Assembly (NCBI GenBank): GCA_965637545.1
Contig: OZ281494.1
Location: 13,640,001 to 13,704,000 of the forward strand
Origin: Phallusia mammillata
Taxonomy: Eukaryota
DNA: 64,000 bases
Reading direction: 5' to 3'
The notes below the pieces were generated by a model, which was given only the letters and a program-made list of their open reading frames with translations, was not told the origin of the DNA and did not search any database. Shown here one piece after another: positions 1 through 26,319 of the stretch. The first letter of the stretch is position 1. Each line of letters opens with the position of its first letter. The position numbers were made by a program, and so were the translations under genes.

Positions 1-1466
1 GCTCGAATTGACCATCGAGACCGGGAAGTGTTAAAGAAAAAACAACAGGGGTAAATTCCATTTTTACAGTTTTACCGATAAAGCATAACATACTGAATTT
101 TTGGACTTTTCAGATCGCTGGATCAGTTTTTCAGACAACGTGTCTAGTCATTACAGGTTTAATATTAAAACATACTTGATGCGCATTGTATAAAAATTAC
201 GTCCATCGAAACAACTTTAAATCATAAAATTGGCAAAATCGTCCTTATTTCACCTTGTCCGTAACGAATTTGAATGATTGATTGTCCGTTTCAAATAACT
301 CAGCTAAAGTTCTTGTCCATACATTGTTTTTCACATTAGTTTGGAGGAATTTCGTTCAACCACACAACAGAAAGAAATGGAATACACGCAATGCCTTGTC
401 AAAATGGCAAAGCGGTTTAAAGAACAACAAGACAAACTCGAACAACTTGTTGATCGTTTCGATAAATCTGTCGACGACATTGAGGAGGTAAACTTGCCAA
501 TTAACGTTTCTGGCATGATCATTTTTTTAGCAGAGTTTTATCGAAACGTGACATTTTTTTGGGCAACTATTAGGGATGTGCCAAAATTGCAAATGTTCTG
601 TTTGGTCGAGCACCGAGCATCTCAAGTTAATGCTCGGTGCTCGGCCGAGCACGCTCGGTGCATTATGACGTCACAAAAAATCCCCTTTCTACCTTTTAGC
701 TCTACAAGGCCTCTTACGTCACCAGCGGTGTATTAAGCTGTTACAGGCCTCAGAAGTACACGTTTTTCCACAATCTAATACATTTGGAAAATCATTTGTT
801 TTTGTTCATAGACACCCTTTCGAACACTAGTTACCTAGGTTAGCAGGGCATGAATATGCAAATTTAATGCTCGGGTCAGTTTGTGCAACTGCTCGGCCGA
901 GCACTGAGCATCAAAAATAGCGATGCTCGGTACCGAGTACTCGGGTTCTGGCTCGGCTCAGCGCATCCCTAGTAACTATGGTAGTGGCAATATACCCACC
1001 ACCATCCAAATAGGGTGCTTGAAAGTTAGAACTTTTCGAGGACGCCGGTAAAGGCTTACTTGTAGAAAGTAATGAGTTGCAACATGTTAACGCACATGTA
1101 TGTGTTGTCTGTGCTACTGCGTAAAAACAGCCTCTTTGTAACCTCCATTTATGCTCCACTAGATTAAAACATATTGTCTGTTATGCCTGACGTAACGGCA
1201 TCATAGTAATTTACGAGTACCATCCTATACTTTATTGGGTTTTACCTAATTAATACAGAAAAATAATGGTTTCCAAGTGTTTTAAGCCATTTAGCCTGTA
1301 CCAATGTCCTCATGTAGCACCTTGATGTCACGCCCTTATACATATTTTATTTTAGTCGTTTAAAAGCACCATGCATTCGCACCAAACCAAGATGGTGGAA
1401 CCAGATTCCGAAATTGCAGCTCTATCCGATTTTGTCGGTCAAGTCCAGGTGGAAAACGCGGGATAA
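1..1466 (+). CDS. 3' part of an unidentified coiled-coil protein gene (exons 1-50, 340-487, 1026-1097, 1356-1466)
   Basis: GT/AG-bounded exons join in consistent phases (2,0,0). The product reads ARIDHRDREVLKKKQQGLEEFRSTTQQKEMEYTQCLVKMAKRFKEQQDKLEQLVDRFDKSVDDIEE-LELFEDAGKG...-SFKSTMHSHQTKMVEPDSEIAALSDFVGQVQVENAG*. The acceptor of exon 1026-1097 is weak and no family is recognised. Confidence 0.5.
571..971. mobile_element. hAT-type MITE in an intron
   Basis: Termini TAGGGATGTGC / GCGCATCCCTA; flanks GCAACTAT / GTAACTAT (7/8 target-site duplication, TSD); repeated palindromic subterminal motif TGCTCGGCCGAGCA. Confidence 0.75.
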
Positions 1467-4400
1467 AAGTAGAGTTTTCAAAAGTTTTATTTGCGCGAAA
1501 AAAAAGCTTTAAGTACGTTAACATAACTTATTGGTTTCATTTGAATTTCTTTATCTCGTGAGACGAAACCCGAAATCTTATGATTTGTGACTACACACCT
1601 GCAACAGCTTCCAATTTCTGGAGGGCTTTAAACAGGTATTCGTGTCTTCTAAGCAGACTCAAATGGTTTGCCAAGTGTAAATGCCTGCATCACCAAATTA
1701 TAATAGTGGCTCTGCGAACTTCCTTGTCTCGTTTATCCGGCTTTTGGTCAATTGATTGTTCGCGGAAAAAAATCGCACGTTCAACAGCCAACCTGCAAAA
1801 TCTTACAAATATGAAATTATTGAAAATTTTGCTTGTAGCTTATATAAGACCTTCTGAAAGATTTCCTTGTTCCCCGGCCAATATTATCACACCATAATAA
1901 CGTTTATTAAGTCAAGTGAACATCATTTTCTAAATGCTGTTCCTGATTCTTAAAGACGAGAAATCAATTATTTATTTTCTAAATTTGAATAAAGCCCGAT
2001 AATGGAACAAGCAATGTATTTTTGTTGTTTTACATTTTGCTTTATTCGCAAACCTGTGTCCTGTACATTTCTAGTCATCCCTTCTGTAATGATCAACAGG
2101 CCGGCTCATAATGTGCTTTTCAGCCACATGGTTTTGTTTACGTTTCGCACGTAACCTATACTTTGTCAATACATTGTCAGAAAACTATTGACGTTTCTTG
2201 ATTACGAAAGCGATGCCGACAAAAAAGTGTAAGCAACGAGTATTGCAGATAGATAGAAGATTCACTGACGGACGGGAATAAGGGATCATGCAGCTCCTTA
2301 ATCTTTAGGATTTTTACAGCTTTTTGTTTGTGATGACTTTTTGCGCTTTGACAAAAAACACTTAAACCGACAACTACATTGTGCCACAGTTAACCGCTAG
2401 AGAAAAAGCTTATTATGATGCCAATATGAAACTTACCAAACCCAAGAAAAAACAACCAGGCTCAAAAAATCGTTAAATTCATCCTCCTGCCATTTAAAAT
2501 TTTATTTTGTTTCCAAGGCCTCATCATTTCTGTTTTCACATTCCAATATCGTACATACAGCCTCTGAATTATATTGCGACTATTGCATTCTTTATCTACG
2601 ATTGTATTCTGTTTGTTTTGGCAGTCATGTTTTTTACCATTAGCCCATTTTCCTTCGTAATCTACCGTCGTATTCATTGCTTCCTACACACAGTCCCATT
2701 TTGTCCGCCCAGAAGACCGTGTTACGTTCCTATGGTCTTAATCACCTTTTTTGCAACCAAGATATCTTTCCACTTACACCGAAAGTTTCATTCCTTGCCC
2801 ACAATTTATTTCGTTTCGCTGCGACATTCCCATTTTGTTCCTGCAGTTTAATTCAAAGCTTATGGTGTGATTCTCCCTCCGACCATCTCATTTATTCAGT
2901 TGCGGTTTTACTGTAAATTAGTGTCTCTTCCGTTTATCCATCATTCGAATAATTAGCACAAGCGGTTGGATCATCACGGTAAAACACCTTACAGCTGCAC
3001 AGTACGCCAGGCCTATTAAAGGCATAAAAGTATCGATAAGTATGCCGTGATCGCAGGTCTGAATCGACGCTTTAGGGCTGATCCCAGTATGAAAATATTC
3101 ATCTTAGCTGCAGCTACACAGGGTCTATAAATAGCGTTCTGCAACGCTAGTGCAACTTTCGTCCAGGGAAAAGATTGGTTTTTCAACTAAGTTAGCATTG
3201 AAGTACAGAGCTTGAAAATGCGGCAATGTTTTCGAATTTAAAAAGTGACTCCATTTAACGCACAGTAAGTAACTTGTGTGTAACAATGTCAGCTTTTGCG
3301 ACACGTCATCATAAATTTCTAATCCAAGGCAGTCTTTAGCGCCCTGTACGACAACTGTGTTTAGAAAAAAGCAGGTATCTATTAGGTCGTGCAAACAAGT
3401 TTAAACTTTAAAAATAGTTCCTGGTGTATAAAAAACACCGAATTCGTGTCAAGTATGTTTCGGTTCCCTGAAACAAACAGTAGGTCTGTGTTTATTGCAC
3501 GTGCTGAGTTACCTTGATGCCATACGAATAGACCATTTGTTTGCTAAAGCAGGTTTACGCTTTTTTTCTGTTCTTTATTTGATGGTTGAAATAAAATCAA
3601 GAGTTTAGTTACAATCGACTCGGGAAGAATTTTTTCAGGGCTCCAGACTTTGGGAAACACTGATTTAGGATAACATTTAGTTTCTGTTGCTTTCAGACTG
3701 AAATCGTACTCAATAAACACCTAAATAGCTTCTAAATCAGAATAAACGGAACCAACTTTCAAATTTTGAATTCATATGGGGAAGATATTTTGTGCATATA
3801 TGTAGATAGAGTCATAACTACAGCACATTATTAAATATGGGCGCTTCGTAGTAGTTAATGTGATTGCGAGGCACCTATAGAAACACGCCAAGAAGTATGA
3901 AAAAGCTGTTAGACAATGTGTAGGAAGATGTATATGACCAATGTCTTGATTAGGTCGTTAAGTACGTACGTATACCTGTAATTGCCATTTTGTAAAGTAA
4001 TTATACAGCAATAGCTGCTTTATTTAGAGTAAAAAATAATTATACAAGTTATACAAGATGGATTTAGAACTCCATCAATTCTTGCAAAACGAGCAGCAAT
4101 TCGTATACACCACGTCACGTGCAATTAAATTGAATCACAAAAACATACTTAGAGTTTTTAAAATGGCACAAACTTTCTAGTTACGACACAGGTAACGATT
4201 TGGTATTAATTTATACCATAAATGATTTCATGACTTGCTCATCTTTTGTTACTAAGAAATCTTCATTGTTGATACACTACATACACATCCTTATTGCGTA
4301 TTGTAAGGGTGCCTATAATAAATTACGCTTTCATCCGGAGTTGGTAATCAAGCTTATCTGCTAATTTGTTGGCGCCTTGCCTAAATCAAATTGCCTATGT

Positions 4401-19180: not shown

Positions 19181-20098
19181 CTGGCCTTTTAAACGATGTT
19201 TCAGTTAAAGTATTAGCGACCTCTTGCGGACAAGATAAACCACTTTAACGTGACAAGAGATATTCCTGAATGTGATATGAATAACAGTAATGCTTTGATT
19301 ATATGAAATGCAAAAAGTAGGTAATGACAGTTTAGTGTCACAAATAACATCACATGGTGTTAATAATTAATTTCTGTACAGTTTCACCTTGCTGGCTTGG
19401 AAATTTGAGGATAAGAATAATCTATTCAGAGACATTAATGGTTCATATCATAACCACTGGTTAGATATCGAAACCAAAATATTGGGTTTTTCACTGATTG
19501 TAAAAGAATATTATAATTTTTGGACATACAACCTGTTCAAACAAATTTGTTTGGTTGAAACTCTTGCAAATATTTCAAAAATTTACTATGTTTACTATAT
19601 AGTAATTATACCATAGACCCCCCCCCAAATATTTGACTTTTCTATTGACTAATTATTATTAAACATAACAAAACAATGTCAGTAGCTATCTCTGTCTTTT
19701 GGTTGTATGGAGTTGACCTACCAAACGCGACATAGTCGACATGGAAATGCATTTCAAAGGCGACATGGAAAATTGGAAATGTATTTATTTGGGCCAAATA
19801 AAACAGAAAAAACTAGAAACAATCTAAAAACGTTGACTTGCAGTCATGCATGTCGTTTCCATATACAGGTAAGCCTATTCTTGTTTTGCGTTTATTTTAC
19901 GCACTACCATCCATCAGAACCAGGTTAAAAAGATTAGGAAGATACAGTTTTATACTAAAGTGATTTCAAACTTTACCATTTTGCATGATTTCTACCGCCT
20001 TAAAAACTAACAAAACAAACATTCGCACCATATACACTAATACTACAGAATAATTATGAAATTTACAAGATTGCTGACAAGTGGATATCAGCAGAAAT

Positions 20099-23000
20099 TT
20101 AACAGTTGTCGGCATATCCGAGATTGTTCATCTCCCGAGACAACTGGCACATTGCGCAACACTTGCAGCAAAGAGTCATAAAACAGTCGCTGCAGATGTC
20201 ACCCTGAAACAAACAGAATGCTCTGCGACGTTATTTCGAAACAGTAAATATATGTGCACCACAAAAGCGCTGAGGAAATTATCTGGCAAGAGTGGAAACA
20301 ACTTATTTCTTGAAGGGTGTACATCAGTTGTCGGCAAACTTTTATTACTGCGATCTGATTTTTTTTGTCATATCTGGAGGCTCACACAGCCAATAAGCCT
20401 GATCTATCGCCGTTCATAGCCTACACGAGAACTAATGGCTAAAGTTTCTTCCTTGTATATGCGCCTAAAACGTTAGTTTAATTTAGCTATCCTTTGCCAA
20501 CCAAAAATTACGCCCAATATTGTACCGCGACCCAAAGTTTGGAGACCATGCAATGTGCAAATTTGTGTTCTTTTCAATCAGCCTTTCAAAGCACCTTAAC
20601 GTTTTTGATGTATCAGGTTAAAACCATTACGTTTAGGGGAATATCGAGTGGACAGGTACAAGCTCATGAACGTATTTTTTATTTTTGTAAACATTATTTA
20701 TAACGTGGCTACTAATTTCTGTTTAGCCAACCACTGTTTCTGTTAACAACAATCTAGTTTTAGAGGCTTTATTCACACCCACAGCAAAAACAATGAAGCC
20801 CACAGCTCAACTTTGACTGCAAATTGAAAGCATATTGCAAGCAGTGTTTTGCTTTAGTACGAAATAACACTCAAGGGCATAAAGCGAAGGATAAATGTCT
20901 CAATAACTTATGCATTAAAATGTAGTTTGTTTTGACAAAAAATGTAAGCTTTGCAATACCACAGAACATACACCATAGCACATCATAAAAGTTTACAAAA
21001 GCAAAAAATACAAAGCCTGTATTGAAAGTTGTGAAATGTAAACAAAAGTTTGTGATATAAGAGCATTGGCAGTTTAACAAATACACATTAACTCACAATA
21101 TCACGCAATTCACAGTTAGTTTGAGGAATTCACAAGTTTGCACAATAAATGCCATGCCAGCTTAAAGAGTTCTGACACATTTACAAAGATTTAGGAATGA
21201 CATTTGCATACGGTAAAATTGGAGATACAGGTGTCCACTTGGCATCTGCTTTGGGCCACAAAGAAGCGCAGCTATACTTTTCATATGTCAGACATCTGAT
21301 CAGCTCCATTGGAAGTAGGTGTATGTTACGTAAATATTTCGTAACAGGTAAAATTCCAGGAAAAAATACACTAACCCAGGAATGAAGCAAGAATGATTGT
21401 GAAATCTGAAGTCTATCTGTGCTAGTGAATCGCCTGGTAAAATCACCAGATTTATCAATGAGTTGAACAGATGCATATTTGACAGATGTACAAGATATGC
21501 TTAAAAGACTTTGCTCTTCATCACTCTCTCCAACATGTACTACAAGGTTATCTTTAATTGGTTGGTCAGTTGTTACTGTGTACTGAAAGTTTATTTTGGT
21601 GCAAAGTGAACGGTACTTCCGCCAAGCGCCCTGTATTTTGCGAGCAGCAACATTTTGCTGGAATAACATTTGCTTACGACACCTAGCCAGATGTCGCAGT
21701 GCTTGTTTTTCTCTCCATACTCTTTGAAATAGAGTTGCAGCTGCCACTCTTCTAAAAATCAGTTCCTTGCGCTGTGCCCTACATAGTCTTCTTTGCAGAA
21801 TAGCCCTCCACCAACTAGCCATCTTTTTTACACTTTGTGACACCACCTTAACTCTTTCCTTGTGAAGAATTTCATACAAATCAGCACTCAAAAAGATTTT
21901 GGTCTTGCCATATTGACAGCACTTTGACATTTCCAAAGTGTCGTAGCTAAGAAGCAAACTTTCTACTAGTATCCTTGAAAAGTCTTCCGGATTTTGAAAA
22001 GCAACTTTTAGTGCTTTTCGTTTCAACAGAAAAGAAAACTGACTGCAAAACTGCTGATAAGACATTTTGTATGGAAGAAAATACCCACATATTTGAATTG
22101 TTTCTACAATTCCAGAGGACTTTAACTGGTCAACAACATGTGGAGAATCAAACTTTTTGGGCACAAGTTGCTGATTGGGTTTTATGCAGCGAATATAATG
22201 GCAGTTTGTTGTTGCCATAGTTTTCAATAAATCATCCAACGATCTTTTAAACTGAATTAAGACTGTTTGGTTCCCCTTTCCCCTTTTAGGCTGGTGAACA
22301 ACTTTGCACTCTGGGTACCTTTCCCTCACCAAAGATCGCAAAAAAACATTACCACTGTTTAACAGCAAATCAACAACCTCTGGTGGAAGCTCATCTTTGT
22401 TTTTTGGTATCAGCTGATCAGTGGTGTAACCCACTTTGCCTGCATAGTGTGACACCACAAAGCATGGCACAGTAAGATTGGACTTTCTTACATAAGTGTT
22501 CTGAGGAAAAGATTGAAATATTCTGTTCATAAGTTGTACAGGATTTGTTGACCGATTTAACCTACATTCCTCATTCAGTAGAGCAAAGAGGCTGGAATGG
22601 GGAGATTCCAGGACCTTCAGACAGGCAATCTTATCTACTAATTCGGAAATGTCCCATGATATTTCATCTGAGCGAAGTTCTTCTTGTTGCAGCTTAAGAA
22701 AGTTATCCACATAGTAATGCTGAAGTTTTTCATTTGCGTAGTTAATGCATAGTTGCTCAAGGGCATTTTGTTTGAAGCTTTCAAAACCGTATATATCCAG
22801 CAAGCCAATGAAGCTGCTTGTCTCATCTTGAGGAGCAGAAATATCACTCACAATTTGATCAACAACCCAGTGAAATATCATCTCATAAACAGACTTTTTA
22901 AGTGCTTCCAATCTAGCCTCACACTCTTGCTGTGTACATGCCTTCTTCACAATGCTTCTTCGCTTTGATTTGCGAAGCTTTCCAGCCTCAATATTTCGAA

Positions 23001-25479
23001 CAGAAATTGCCTGTACTAGATTGTTGATTGGAACAGTCATAAGGCATGCAGCATATTTCAAATGTTTTTGACAAGATTTAGTTGGGAGACATGGGTCATT
23101 AAAATTATCATTGCCCTCAAGCGCAACTTTGCCTAAGTGCATAATTGATGCTAAGACTGTAAAAATTTCCATTTGTGTTTCTGATGAAATTCCTATTGCT
23201 GACATAGCACTTTGTGTTACTTTAAATGCCGATGGAGTTTCCATGAAGTTTTCATTCCCTTCCTTTAACAATTCACTATTCTTTTCCATAGTAAATAAAA
23301 ATTCCTTTGGTGAAACATTGCTGTTTGTATTTAAATTCTTTTTTTCTGGACCATCATTATTTTCCAAAAAGCACCATTTCATTTTCTGTTCTACTGTGCT
23401 ACCATGCAACATTTGGTAAAATATATGAAAAGTTTGTTCATTTTCATTTTTTCTGGCAACTCTGGTTTTTTCAAGTAAATATGTCTGTAGTGTGGCCCCA
23501 ATGATATTTCCAGATCGATTGTATTGCAACTGAATGTACTTTCCGAATCTGCTGCTGTTGTGATTGCGAGGGGTGGCTGCATTTCCAAAGGCTTCCAAAA
23601 TTGGGTTGGAGCTTAATATTCGCTTTTCAATTTGGTGGTGTGTGGTGAATGACATGTCAAATGGAGAACTACACACAGGTTGACAACTTTCAGTTTCCTC
23701 ATTGTTGTTGCTGTCTATTCCAACATATGTAAGGTAATGCATCAGACAAGATACAGTCCAGGTTTTTCCAGCTCCACTCTCACCACTAATTATAATAGAC
23801 TGATTACTTTGTCCCATACTGTCAAGCATGTCTCTCCGGGCCTTTTCAACGACAGAAAATACATGTGCTGGCATTGCTGATAGTTCTGCTGTAGATGCAC
23901 CATGGTAGGCATGAATCATTTTTCTGCTGAACATCTCATCAACCTCTTGAAAAGGGTTAATTGCAAGCACTGTACCAGCACCTAATTTACGGTAAAACAC
24001 TCCACAATGATACATTTCTCTCAGTGAATATAACACAGCAGGTGTTGTTAAAGAAGTCATTTTTGATAAGTCTGAATGAAAATATTCCGTTTGCATGACT
24101 TCGTCGAAGCAATTCCACGATGCAATTGAATGAATGTCTCGTTTCGAAATGCGTTGCTTTTCGCTGGACAATGTGCCCACAACATACTCGCCGTTTTGGC
24201 AGACTTCGACAACTCTTACTGGATTCCAAACATCACTTGTGTGTTTTGCCCACACCCAAATACCCTCTTGTAAAGTCATTTCCATACTTATTCTGTGAGT
24301 TTCAAAAAACAGTCCAATGAATTCAAACAAATTGCATATAAAACGCCTTCCAACTTGATTTGATTTCAAAAGTACCTCCAGGCTAATTTATGACCTTAGT
24401 GCGCACTCATGCGTCACCGTATTTTTAATCCTGACGTCAAGACACAAAAATCATAAAAAACTTGTTTTTGCTTATGAACGTAAGTTTGGTGGTTTGCGAT
24501 CAATTTTTGGCATAATATTACGCATATTTGACTTCGTTTGCGTTGCTACACCCTTCTTTCTTGCTTTCTTTCTGTTTTGTCAATTACGTGTTCGTATGTC
24601 ATGCCATTGTGAGCATAACGCATTCAGGCGTTGCCCGCCAACCGAGGATAAAAATGAAACAAAACAAACAAACAAAACGCCTACCGTTTTCACGAACCTA
24701 TTTCGCACCCTTTGCAAGTAAATAGTTTGCCCGTCTGAGACTGAGAGCCATGCAATTTGTGTCAATGCTAGCGTGTTAAAAAAACTATTTTACCTGAATG
24801 CCATGAGTGCCTCTGAACCTGGATCTCATTGCCAAGTGACCCCCTGGAACACAACCAGCTGGTTCTCCGGAGCATCCAACACAGCAGTTTTCTCCCATAC
24901 GCGCAGCAATGCATGCAAAGTAGAAGTGACAGCAGAAAGTTGTCAGGCAACCTACGAATGTTAGTAAAATAAAGACATAAAAGCAGAGCCAAATTTTAAT
25001 TAGTCAAGGCAAACATTTATGCACAATAGTGAAAAAATTCGAATAACAACGGTGACCTTGAGTGAAAAAATACTTGTCCGGTTCGCTGTATGCAAGAACA
25101 CGATAATCGTAGTGAGAGAGGTTGCTAATTTTTTATATTGTTTAACTTATCTTAAATCCGACTAAATTATACGACAAAAGTCATTAATCCTGTTTCGCAT
25201 TATTTCGGTTTTCAGTCAGTTTGAAAAAGTATTGACAACTTACAGCTTTTCATATCAAGGCAACATTCACATAGGCCAGTGCTCCATCCTTTGCCATTTA
25301 TAACTGGCTGTTGGGTTACAATGGTGGTTGTTACCGCTGGTTGAGTTGTGACAACGTTCGGTGGCTGACTTGTGTACGTCACACTTTGATAAGCCTTGTT
25401 GCGACAACAAACAAATATGTTCAATTTAAGAAATCCGTTTGGCAAGAACATGCATACTTACGGGATTCACAGCTGTCAT
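20099..25479 (-). CDS. PLAC8/cornifelin-family Cys-rich protein, ~143 aa (exons 25479-25462, 25394-25244, 24951-24794, 20203-20099)
   Basis: Phase-consistent GT/AG exons give MTAVNP-AYQSV...QQPVINGKGWSTGLCECCLDMKSC-CLTTFCC...RMGENCCVG...LAMRSRFRGTHGIQ-GDICSDCFMTLCCKCCAMCQLSREMNNLGYADNC*, the canonical PLAC8 motif series. Confidence 0.88.
21181..24285 (-). CDS. MYO19: Myosin XIX-like unconventional myosin, intronless, ~1034 aa from the first ATG
   Basis: P-loop GESGAGKTWT (the KTWT is MYO19-like), EAFGNAATPRNHNSSRFGKYIQLQ, TYLLEKTRVA, DIYGFE and CIKPN are present, with three IQ-like motifs. The tail end SPILPYANVIP resembles the MYO19 tail motif SPLRYADICP. The ORF track's TTG start at 24369 is replaced by the ATG at 24285. 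Confidence 0.85.
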   Translation of the reverse strand: MEMTLQEGIWVWAKHTSDVWNPVRVVEVCQNGEYVVGTLSSEKQRISKRDIHSIASWNCFDEVMQTEYFHSDLSKMTSLTTPAVLYSLREMYHCGVFYRKLGAGTVLAINPFQEVDEMFSRKMIHAYHGASTAELSAMPAHVFSVVEKARRDMLDSMGQSNQSIIISGESGAGKTWTVSCLMHYLTYVGIDSNNNEETESCQPVCSSPFDMSFTTHHQIEKRILSSNPILEAFGNAATPRNHNSSRFGKYIQLQYNRSGNIIGATLQTYLLEKTRVARKNENEQTFHIFYQMLHGSTVEQKMKWCFLENNDGPEKKNLNTNSNVSPKEFLFTMEKNSELLKEGNENFMETPSAFKVTQSAMSAIGISSETQMEIFTVLASIMHLGKVALEGNDNFNDPCLPTKSCQKHLKYAACLMTVPINNLVQAISVRNIEAGKLRKSKRRSIVKKACTQQECEARLEALKKSVYEMIFHWVVDQIVSDISAPQDETSSFIGLLDIYGFESFKQNALEQLCINYANEKLQHYYVDNFLKLQQEELRSDEISWDISELVDKIACLKVLESPHSSLFALLNEECRLNRSTNPVQLMNRIFQSFPQNTYVRKSNLTVPCFVVSHYAGKVGYTTDQLIPKNKDELPPEVVDLLLNSGNVFLRSLVRERYPECKVVHQPKRGKGNQTVLIQFKRSLDDLLKTMATTNCHYIRCIKPNQQLVPKKFDSPHVVDQLKSSGIVETIQICGYFLPYKMSYQQFCSQFSFLLKRKALKVAFQNPEDFSRILVESLLLSYDTLEMSKCCQYGKTKIFLSADLYEILHKERVKVVSQSVKKMASWWRAILQRRLCRAQRKELIFRRVAAATLFQRVWREKQALRHLARCRKQMLFQQNVAARKIQGAWRKYRSLCTKINFQYTVTTDQPIKDNLVVHVGESDEEQSLLSISCTSVKYASVQLIDKSGDFTRRFTSTDRLQISQSFLLHSWVSVFFPGILPVTKYLRNIHLLPMELIRCLTYEKYSCASLWPKADAKWTPVSPILPYANVIPKSL

Positions 25480-26319
25480 TGTTCTTTGATTTTTTAGACT
25501 ACAAAACTTATTATAGCTAAGCTTTTGCGCACTGTGGCCAAAGAAAAAAACTGGTGAAGCAAATCGAGCGTGAAATAGAAATGTTACCTTTATGGTTTTG
25601 CCAGAACCCGCCACGCTATTTTATCGACTATAGAAAGCTTTTTGTGAAATTCGGGGAAAACGTATAGCAAACAAAACAAACCCTCAATCTATTGTGTTCA
25701 TTTTTGATGAAAGGAGGTTCATGGATACGTCTTTATGTAAATGGATCGTTTGAATCAAATGAAAAACACAGTTTTATATTTTGAAATATATATATGTATT
25801 AGGTGCTGTTAACATTTATCACTTTCACTTTGAACCCACATACGTTGGTTTTTTAAGCATTTTTTTATACGTTGAAGCTGACTAAATTTATTTTGTTAAA
25901 CAACCTGTTGATAAATCCTTCAATACATTTTGTAGCAACTGTTTTAAATGCTTGAATTGCCTTTAACATCACTTAAAGGCTATAACCTTCTGAAGGACTT
26001 CCAATGCCTGGACTGTTTGAGGCCACTAACTTTACAAACATCCAAGCCCTACTAAACCAACAAGCTGAATTTAACAAAGACTTGTCGAGTTTTGTAAAGC
26101 TGCTACTGCGTCTCAATGTTAAATCATAATCGTATCACATTGTCAGGATTTATTATGATGCTAACGCCTCGTTACCAACAAAGCGAGAACGAATATAAGT
26201 TATCAAACATAAAAGAGTCTATTATAAATTTAAATGAAAAACGAGAAATGTTCAAAGGACAATGAACGGAGGTTTGGTGAAGGATTTTTCCTCTTCTGTC
26301 AGAAAGGTCAATCGTTTGT

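Follow-up and report, generated by a model that had tools for sequence, protein, structure and literature searches.

Retrogenes that have replaced their parental genes ("orphan" retrogenes) are known from human and from animals more widely (Ciomborowska et al. 2013, PMC3548309; Carelli et al. 2016, PMC4772013; review PMC5470649). Genes nested in the introns of other genes constitute another described group, and single-exon genes are frequent among them: in human, about 63% of them are antisense to the host and about 37% sense, and 41% consist of a single exon (Kaer et al. 2011, PMC3192792). Among gene-overlapping human retrocopies, 838 of 2139 lie on the host strand (PMC7290577). Nested genes can cause transcriptional interference (PMC3192792). 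The locus considered here, from the ascidian Phallusia mammillata, is comparable to both groups. It lies in a 64-kb stretch of DNA (the window; C1:13,640,001-13,704,000, from a chromosome-scale contig of a 240-Mb assembly in 312 contigs; short coordinates below count from its first letter), in which a single-exon gene for the unconventional myosin MYO19 sits within the last intron of a PLAC8/cornifelin gene, both on the minus strand. Most probably MYO19 reached this intron by sense retroposition, its parent was lost, and the copy persists as an independently transcribed orphan retrogene.

Like the orphan retrogenes, Phallusia MYO19 is intron-free while its outgroups are multi-exon, occupies a new locus, has no parent beside it in the genome, and keeps an intact, expressed open reading frame (ORF). 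It differs from them in that the organism is a tunicate and the gene MYO19, and in its long branch (0.98 vs 0.54-0.62 in relatives), whereas human orphan retrogenes are reported to be under strong constraint. Like the nested intronic genes, it is a single-exon unit wholly contained in an intron, and its sense promoter and poly(A) signal stand in the path of host transcription; unlike in described cases, interference in Phallusia is presumed from the geometry, and expression of the host is conjectural. A first-pass annotation of the window, made from the letters alone, considered nested genes to be usually antisense to their hosts; this agrees with the majority of human cases, but the same-strand arrangement, though the minority state, is not rare. 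At the protein level, the closest system is vertebrate and other deuterostome MYO19, a mitochondria-associated class XIX myosin (PMC9929473, PMC8186483). The Phallusia protein resembles it in its intact ATPase motifs, short IQ-like neck, short tail with a conserved C-terminal motif, and orthologous position in the tree. It is different in being encoded by one exon, versus at least 13 in other ascidians, and in its poorly aligning mid-tail; its sequence only hints at binding of the tail to the mitochondrial outer membrane (MyMOMA/Miro-binding).

The MYO19 gene and its transcript

The MYO19 coding sequence occupies 21181-24285 on the minus strand as a single exon of 1034 codons plus a stop (21183-21181), with the initial Met at 24285; the whole listed ORF extends over 21181-24369. 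It is listed at 100% identity to UniProt A0A6F9DMF7 from P. mammillata ("Unconventional myosin-XIX", 1034 amino acids, aa). The Pfam Myosin_head domain is matched in full (positions 2-678/679, E 2.6e-168), and the P-loop (GESGAGKT), switch I (NSSRFGK), and switch II (DIYGFE) motifs are intact. Pfam IQ (PF00612) is unreported for the protein at E<=0.01, though it is reported for many orthologues; by eye, the neck, which in class XIX has three IQ motifs, contains one canonical IQ motif (IQGAWRKYR) and two degenerate IQ-like stretches. The tail includes a hydrophobic stretch and has the C-terminal end SP..ILPYANVIPK, which represents a motif, SP..(L/I)(P/H)(Y/F)(A/S)N..P, common to the Phallusia and vertebrate proteins (SP.L.FANICP in vertebrates). 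An allelic difference is present at about 21590-21610, in the third IQ motif, where the UniProt entry reads KIQDAWQKY and the window KIQGAWRKY.

Nearly all named proteins among the 120 best matches are MYO19 from tunicates, amphioxus, echinoderms, and vertebrates. The maximum-likelihood tree was built from MYO19 sequences and, as the sole other myosin, one fungal outgroup. It places the Phallusia protein inside the tunicate clade beside Ciona and Clavelina (Shimodaira-Hasegawa-like approximate likelihood ratio test, SH-aLRT, 100 for tunicates and 82-86 for the inner forks) and recovers the deuterostome phylogeny. Judged by its sequence, the myosin of the window is a member of class XIX, the MYO19 orthologue, and encodes an intact motor.

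Transcription was followed with Logan contigs from four runs of four studies (X1, X2, X3, and X17), aligned to 19850-25650. These runs are labelled "RNA?" only; they are read as transcript assemblies because DNA libraries from four studies would not all halt where the gene does. Another two of the listed runs contain 0.90-0.95 of the stretch, evidently as DNA. The contigs cover a MYO19 transcription unit at 20755-24399 (minus strand), about 3645 nucleotides (nt) long and composed of a 114-nt 5' untranslated region, the coding sequence, and a 426-nt 3' untranslated region. Individual spans are 20925-24399 and 20766-20950 in X1, 20762-24377 in X2, 20757-24367 in X3, and 20755-24352 in X17. In all four runs the contigs are colinear with the genome, without joints, indels, loose 5' letters, or spliced-leader tails, and they end 2-13 nt past the AATAAA poly(A) signal at 20768-20773 (minus strand). 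Within the aligned region, the PLAC8 exons and the flanks of MYO19 have no contig cover in these runs, and no RNA across the 24794-20203 splice is seen in them. The MYO19 mRNA is unspliced, about 3.65 kb long, and has ends of its own; it is transcribed independently in samples without detectable PLAC8. Further allelic differences are noted at 23122-23123, 23483, and 24223-24224, and the contig of one run differs from the assembly in five bases.

A putative core promoter of MYO19 is located at 24420-24439 (minus strand). It consists of a perfect palindromic cyclic AMP response element (CRE; TGACGTCA, 24439-24432) and a TATA-like box (ATTAAAAATA, 24429-24420), and the 5' end of the longest contig (24399) lies 33-40 nt past the former and 21-30 nt past the latter. 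The contigs cannot fix exact transcript ends and are weak evidence for the true 5' ends, so the two elements are a presumed MYO19 promoter. Nine perfect CRE palindromes occur in the window (666, 8310, 13489, 17218, 24432, 32286, 32934, 43293, and 60948), where about one is expected from its length, and promoters of the Phallusia genome may commonly include a CRE.

Copy number, introns and genomic position

A six-frame search of the whole genome yielded one full-length MYO19 locus, all other matches being short exons of other myosins; the absence of a parental copy is limited by the completeness of the assembly. In the relatives, the gene spans 7.8 kb (Clavelina lepadiformis), 19.4 kb (Styela clava), and 12.2 kb (Ciona intestinalis), with 13-14 coding blocks each. 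Exon boundaries common to these relatives fall at Phallusia residues 123/124, 304, 388/389, 494, 534/535, 630/631, and about 717. According to the first-pass annotation, vertebrate MYO19 genes have more than 20 exons. The intron-free state in Phallusia is derived and lineage-specific, because the relatives are multi-exon and the Phallusia protein nests within the tunicate clade.

The genomic neighborhood has changed as well. In both Clavelina and Ciona, MYO19 is followed on its own strand by a GAS2-like gene; in Clavelina, it is also preceded by a TBC gene. Phallusia retains these two neighbors in their relative orientation (TBC exons at C1:19,418,079, 69-76% identity; GAS2-like gene at C1:19,487,253-19,488,479, 83-91%), while its MYO19 is located at C1:13.66 Mb, 5.8 Mb away from the GAS2-like gene. 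No MYO19 relic was detected at E<=1 in the interval of about 66 kb between the TBC and GAS2-like genes (tblastn, with four MYO19 proteins as queries, over 90 kb that include the interval). Another myosin, situated 137 kb beyond the GAS2-like gene (C1:19,620,001-19,630,000, minus strand), was considered as a candidate parent and rejected: it is a multi-exon class II heavy chain with Myosin_head and Myosin_tail_1 domains.

These results bear on several expectations of the first-pass annotation. It had described a complete intronless MYO19, and the full Myosin_head domain, the 1034 codons, and the colinear contigs bear this out. It had named independent 5' and 3' ends of the gene as a check, and the contigs are confined to 20755-24399 in the four runs. 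The second, intron-containing MYO19 for which it suggested looking was not found in the 240-Mb assembly, which has one locus. It had also proposed to compare synteny in relatives; the MYO19 - GAS2-like order of Ciona and Clavelina is broken in Phallusia.

An uninterrupted MYO19 ORF of 1092 aa is also encoded by a Tara Oceans METAG scaffold labelled as metagenomic DNA (L029, 4885 nt; ORF at 76-3354), 40% identical to the Phallusia protein. In the tree it falls within another tunicate clade, whose sequences come mostly from plankton samples and are possibly from thaliaceans, and may represent a second, independent intron-free MYO19. A shared origin with the Phallusia gene was rejected, given the different tunicate clade and a scaffold without a PLAC8 exon alongside. 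The literature searched yielded no report of MYO19 without introns or of MYO19 as a retrogene.

The PLAC8/cornifelin host and its last intron

The host gene is read from the minus strand, as are all its features given here. Candidate exon 1 (25462-25479, 18 nt) comprises an ATG with five codons and the donor CCC/GTAAGT; it is a reading of the letters and has no RNA cover. A second candidate start is an in-frame ATG at 25451, in the supposed intron 1, which would make exon 2 the first exon, unspliced; the ORF list includes an ORF at 25212-25451 that spans this ATG. Exon 2 (25244-25394, 151 nt) encodes a Thr/Gln/Pro-rich N-terminal part and the beginning of the Cys-rich domain, and, in six annotated cornifelins of ascidians, matches the stretch that immediately precedes the exon 3 part. 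Exon 3 (24794-24951, 158 nt) ends with ...GGCATTCAG at the phase-0 donor CAG/GTAAAA. Exon 4 (20099-20203), which follows the acceptor tgtttgtttcag and begins with GGTGAC, provides 34 codons and a TAA (20101-20099) and corresponds to the conserved C-terminal piece of the PLAC8 family. A 34-nt piece of intron 2 (25088-25121) matches the central part of a 688-nt transcript contig of X1 that is unrelated to PLAC8, and is probably a short dispersed repeat.

The peptides were searched exon by exon. Over their whole length, those of exons 2-4 show 44-77% identity to six annotated PLAC8 proteins of ascidians, and they are contiguous in these six cornifelin/PLAC8 proteins (from Styela and Clavelina) and in one transcript-derived protein, with exon 4 as the C-terminus. 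Exon 4 begins at the residue directly after the end of exon 3 in the annotated homologues, and the intron phase agrees. By itself, exon 4 matches Pfam PLAC8 (PF04749; profile 78-101/101, 21.5 bits), a fragment below the whole-protein cut-off. The HMMER matches of exon 3 are ORFs on genomic contigs of other ascidians; since these ORFs all run through the GT at the exact end of exon 3, the position of the exon 3-exon 4 intron is conserved. A gene model in which exon 3 is joined to exon 4 is sound by homology. The protein collection yielded no spliced PLAC8 protein from Phallusia, a word-index search via the exon 3 part giving Styela and Clavelina cornifelins, and a literature search found no paper on a Phallusia cornifelin.

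PLAC8/cornifelin is a multi-copy family in Phallusia, with a tandem cluster on C8, where members are located at C8:13,939,862-13,960,797, C8:14,130,411-14,130,848, and C8:2,048,094-2,048,701. Further pieces of the family are located at C1:13,623,272-13,623,373 and C1:16,861,318-16,861,419, one weak exon-4-like piece lying about 17 kb before the window start. The compact Phallusia genes have last introns of 0.19-1.1 kb. A T-box gene of Clavelina lepadiformis is followed downstream by a tandem array of three PLAC8 genes, each about 1.1-1.4 kb long (L031, 6341-15676). The first of them, annotated with 171 aa, has no Pfam hit on record, yet contains clear homologues of exons 3 and 4.

At the MYO19 locus, the exon 3-exon 4 intron measures 4590 nt. 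Its counterpart is 192, 359, 529, and about 1100 nt long in four Phallusia paralogues and 235, 299, 514, and 538 nt in four Clavelina genes; three contigs from other ascidians have about 925-970 nt here and lack a myosin. At 0.19-1.1 kb, the intron is short in all 11 of these ascidian loci. Those of the relatives have no flanking gene in common with the window, and the compared introns are regarded as homologous rather than as a proven orthologous empty site.

Possible marks of insertion are present on both sides of MYO19. Copies of a 13-nt direct repeat, identical at 12 of 13 positions, constitute a candidate target-site duplication (5' copy TACGTTCATAAGC, 24470-24482; 3' copy TACGTTCATGAGC, 20662-20674; both minus strand) and point to TACGTTCAT(A/G)AGC as a candidate target site. 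The 3' copy abuts an A-rich tract (core ACAAAAATAAAAAA, 20675-20694, minus strand; 13 A in 20 nt), possibly a decayed poly(A) tail. The repeat encloses 3795 nt. A repeat of this length arose in 12 of 300 shuffles and, among 60 genomic control pairs, in 2; 0.7-1.3% of 20-nt windows are as A-rich as the tract. What lies outside would be the remnants of the PLAC8 intron: 311 nt at its 5' side (24483-24793), with neither an AATAAA nor an alternative PLAC8 terminal exon, and 458 nt at its 3' side (20204-20661), with the strong acceptor tctgtttgtttcag. Once the insert is taken out together with one copy of the repeat, the residual intron is 782 nt long, within the family range. Together, the repeat and the A-tract are suggestive marks of retroposition.

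The arrangement drawn by the first-pass annotation, in which exon 3 ends at 24794, the AATAAA lies at 20773-20768, exon 4 occupies 20203-20099, and the myosin ORF stands between the two exons, is correct in all coordinates on the minus strand. Its assignment of exon 4 as the last exon of the host is upheld by homology, namely by the mapping of homologues, the phase, and a region before 24400 that offers no alternative terminal exon or AATAAA. Its suggestion that MYO19 was retroposed into the intron is in keeping with the multi-exon relatives, the conserved neighborhood elsewhere, and the short, empty homologous PLAC8 introns. Replacement of the parent by the retrocopy, which goes beyond what it predicted, is well supported.

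Origin of the nest and alternative explanations

In the proposed history, reverse transcription of a processed MYO19 mRNA would have produced a cDNA that entered, in sense orientation, the last intron, then about 0.8 kb long, of a PLAC8/cornifelin gene. The insertion would have taken place once the Phallusia lineage had parted from those of Ciona and Clavelina. The original multi-exon MYO19, upstream of the GAS2-like gene, would later have been lost, leaving the retrocopy as the sole MYO19, transcribed alone from a start near 24399 to the AATAAA at 20773-20768. Given the single copy, the multi-exon relatives, the tree, the different synteny, and the short homologous introns, one retroposition followed by loss of the parent is the most economical explanation. 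Retroposition is the presumed mechanism, to which the candidate target-site duplication and the A-tract lend support. Several observations weigh against this history. The repeat is short, has a chance of about 3-4% if taken alone, and was spotted post hoc; it also lies 70-80 nt outside the present transcript ends. A real repeat would put the CRE and the TATA-like box inside the insert, and the parental transcript would therefore have begun upstream of its own promoter. There is no CRE near the MYO19 starts of Ciona or Clavelina, and inheritance of the promoter from the parent was set aside as having no support. The relatives compared lie outside the Ascidiidae and give neither a true orthologous empty site nor a date for the event. 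Finally, PLAC8 RNA is absent from all four runs, which leaves a nest with a working host conjectural.

The last point is accommodated if the insertion killed the host, leaving the PLAC8 exons as relics, with any transcripts stopping at the MYO19 poly(A) site and the paralogues covering the function. Consistent with this, the exons are without contig cover in the four runs, each from a different study, the sampled words are present at 0.58-0.64 in the other RNA-like runs, about what the MYO19 unit alone would account for, and a sense AATAAA stands in the host transcription path. At least four paralogues reside on contig C8, and no matching spliced protein exists in the protein collection. On the other hand, the four exons preserve open frames, canonical GT/AG sites, a strong acceptor, and the full Cys pattern; the range of samples behind the runs seems limited, and PLAC8/cornifelin genes are often tissue-restricted. 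As the insertion may be young or old, the intactness of the exons is weak evidence either way, and the death of the host is considered unlikely but not negligible. The existence of this host gene as such depends on exon 4 belonging to it. One could propose that PLAC8 uses another terminal exon before 24400 and that 20203-20099 is part of another gene or a stray fragment, and the exon 3-exon 4 junction indeed has no RNA evidence. When the whole genome was searched for the peptides of exons 3 and 4, however, the window gave a single exon-3-type and a single exon-4-type sequence, and no homologue of exons 1-3 lies between the 3' end of MYO19 and exon 4. Crossing the exon 3 donor unspliced leads to a stop after two codons, and no AATAAA occurs in 24793-24400; moreover, exon 4 succeeds exon 3 residue for residue in every annotated homologue, with agreeing phase. 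A foreign exon 4 is, in consequence of all this, scarcely credible.

The route taken by MYO19 might also have been different. The gene could have moved at the DNA level and lost its introns stepwise or by in-situ cDNA recombination, within the range of tunicate intron turnover. Tunicate genomes are highly rearranged, MYO19 synteny in Ciona, Clavelina, and Styela differs save for the GAS2-like gene, and the repeat with the A-tract is only suggestive. Yet at least 12 coding introns and any introns of the untranslated regions are all gone at once while neighboring genes of the window retain theirs, and the unit sits precisely within an otherwise normal-sized intron with transcript-sized boundaries. 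As such a history needs two independent rare processes instead of one, it is improbable. Alternatively, MYO19 could be driven by the PLAC8 promoter, as a downstream cistron that is operon-like or receives a spliced leader by trans-splicing, as occurs in tunicates. The same-strand arrangement would permit it, and Ciona is known for spliced-leader trans-splicing and for operons rich in intron-poor genes. Against this, the 5' ends of the contigs (24352-24399) carry neither spliced-leader nor upstream-exon letters nor joints, within the limit that contigs set on true 5' ends; MYO19 is detected where the PLAC8 exons are not; and the CRE and TATA-like box are placed 21-40 nt upstream of the longest contig. 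Dependence on the PLAC8 promoter is thus very hard to sustain.

If the host of the retroposed MYO19 is alive, a full PLAC8 protein would require that exons 3 and 4 be spliced together despite the 3.8-kb insert. As the first-pass annotation proposed, and judging from the geometry and from known nested genes (PMC3192792), host transcription would presumably have to cross both the promoter and the poly(A) site of MYO19, and the two genes might compete or interfere. A bolder and rather doubtful extension, for the case that the 13-nt repeat marks the true ends of the insert, is that a promoter-carrying retrocopy gates its host: PLAC8 would be conditional on bypass of the poly(A) site, and expression would be mutually exclusive, with MYO19 broad and PLAC8 present only upon read-through.

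The replacement of a parent by its retrocopy is clean and well documented here, not unprecedented, and no general principle is altered by it. The case provides, with comparative evidence, a conserved single-copy gene of a cytoskeletal motor that was swapped for its own retrocopy in an ascidian. Where the retrocopy has replaced its parent, the regulation of Phallusia MYO19 would therefore rest on a new promoter and a new chromatin context, which is relevant wherever Phallusia is used beside Ciona for studies of mitochondrial positioning in eggs and embryos. The same-strand nest may also serve as a compact natural test bed for interference between promoters and poly(A) sites, as ascidian embryos are easily electroporated with reporters.

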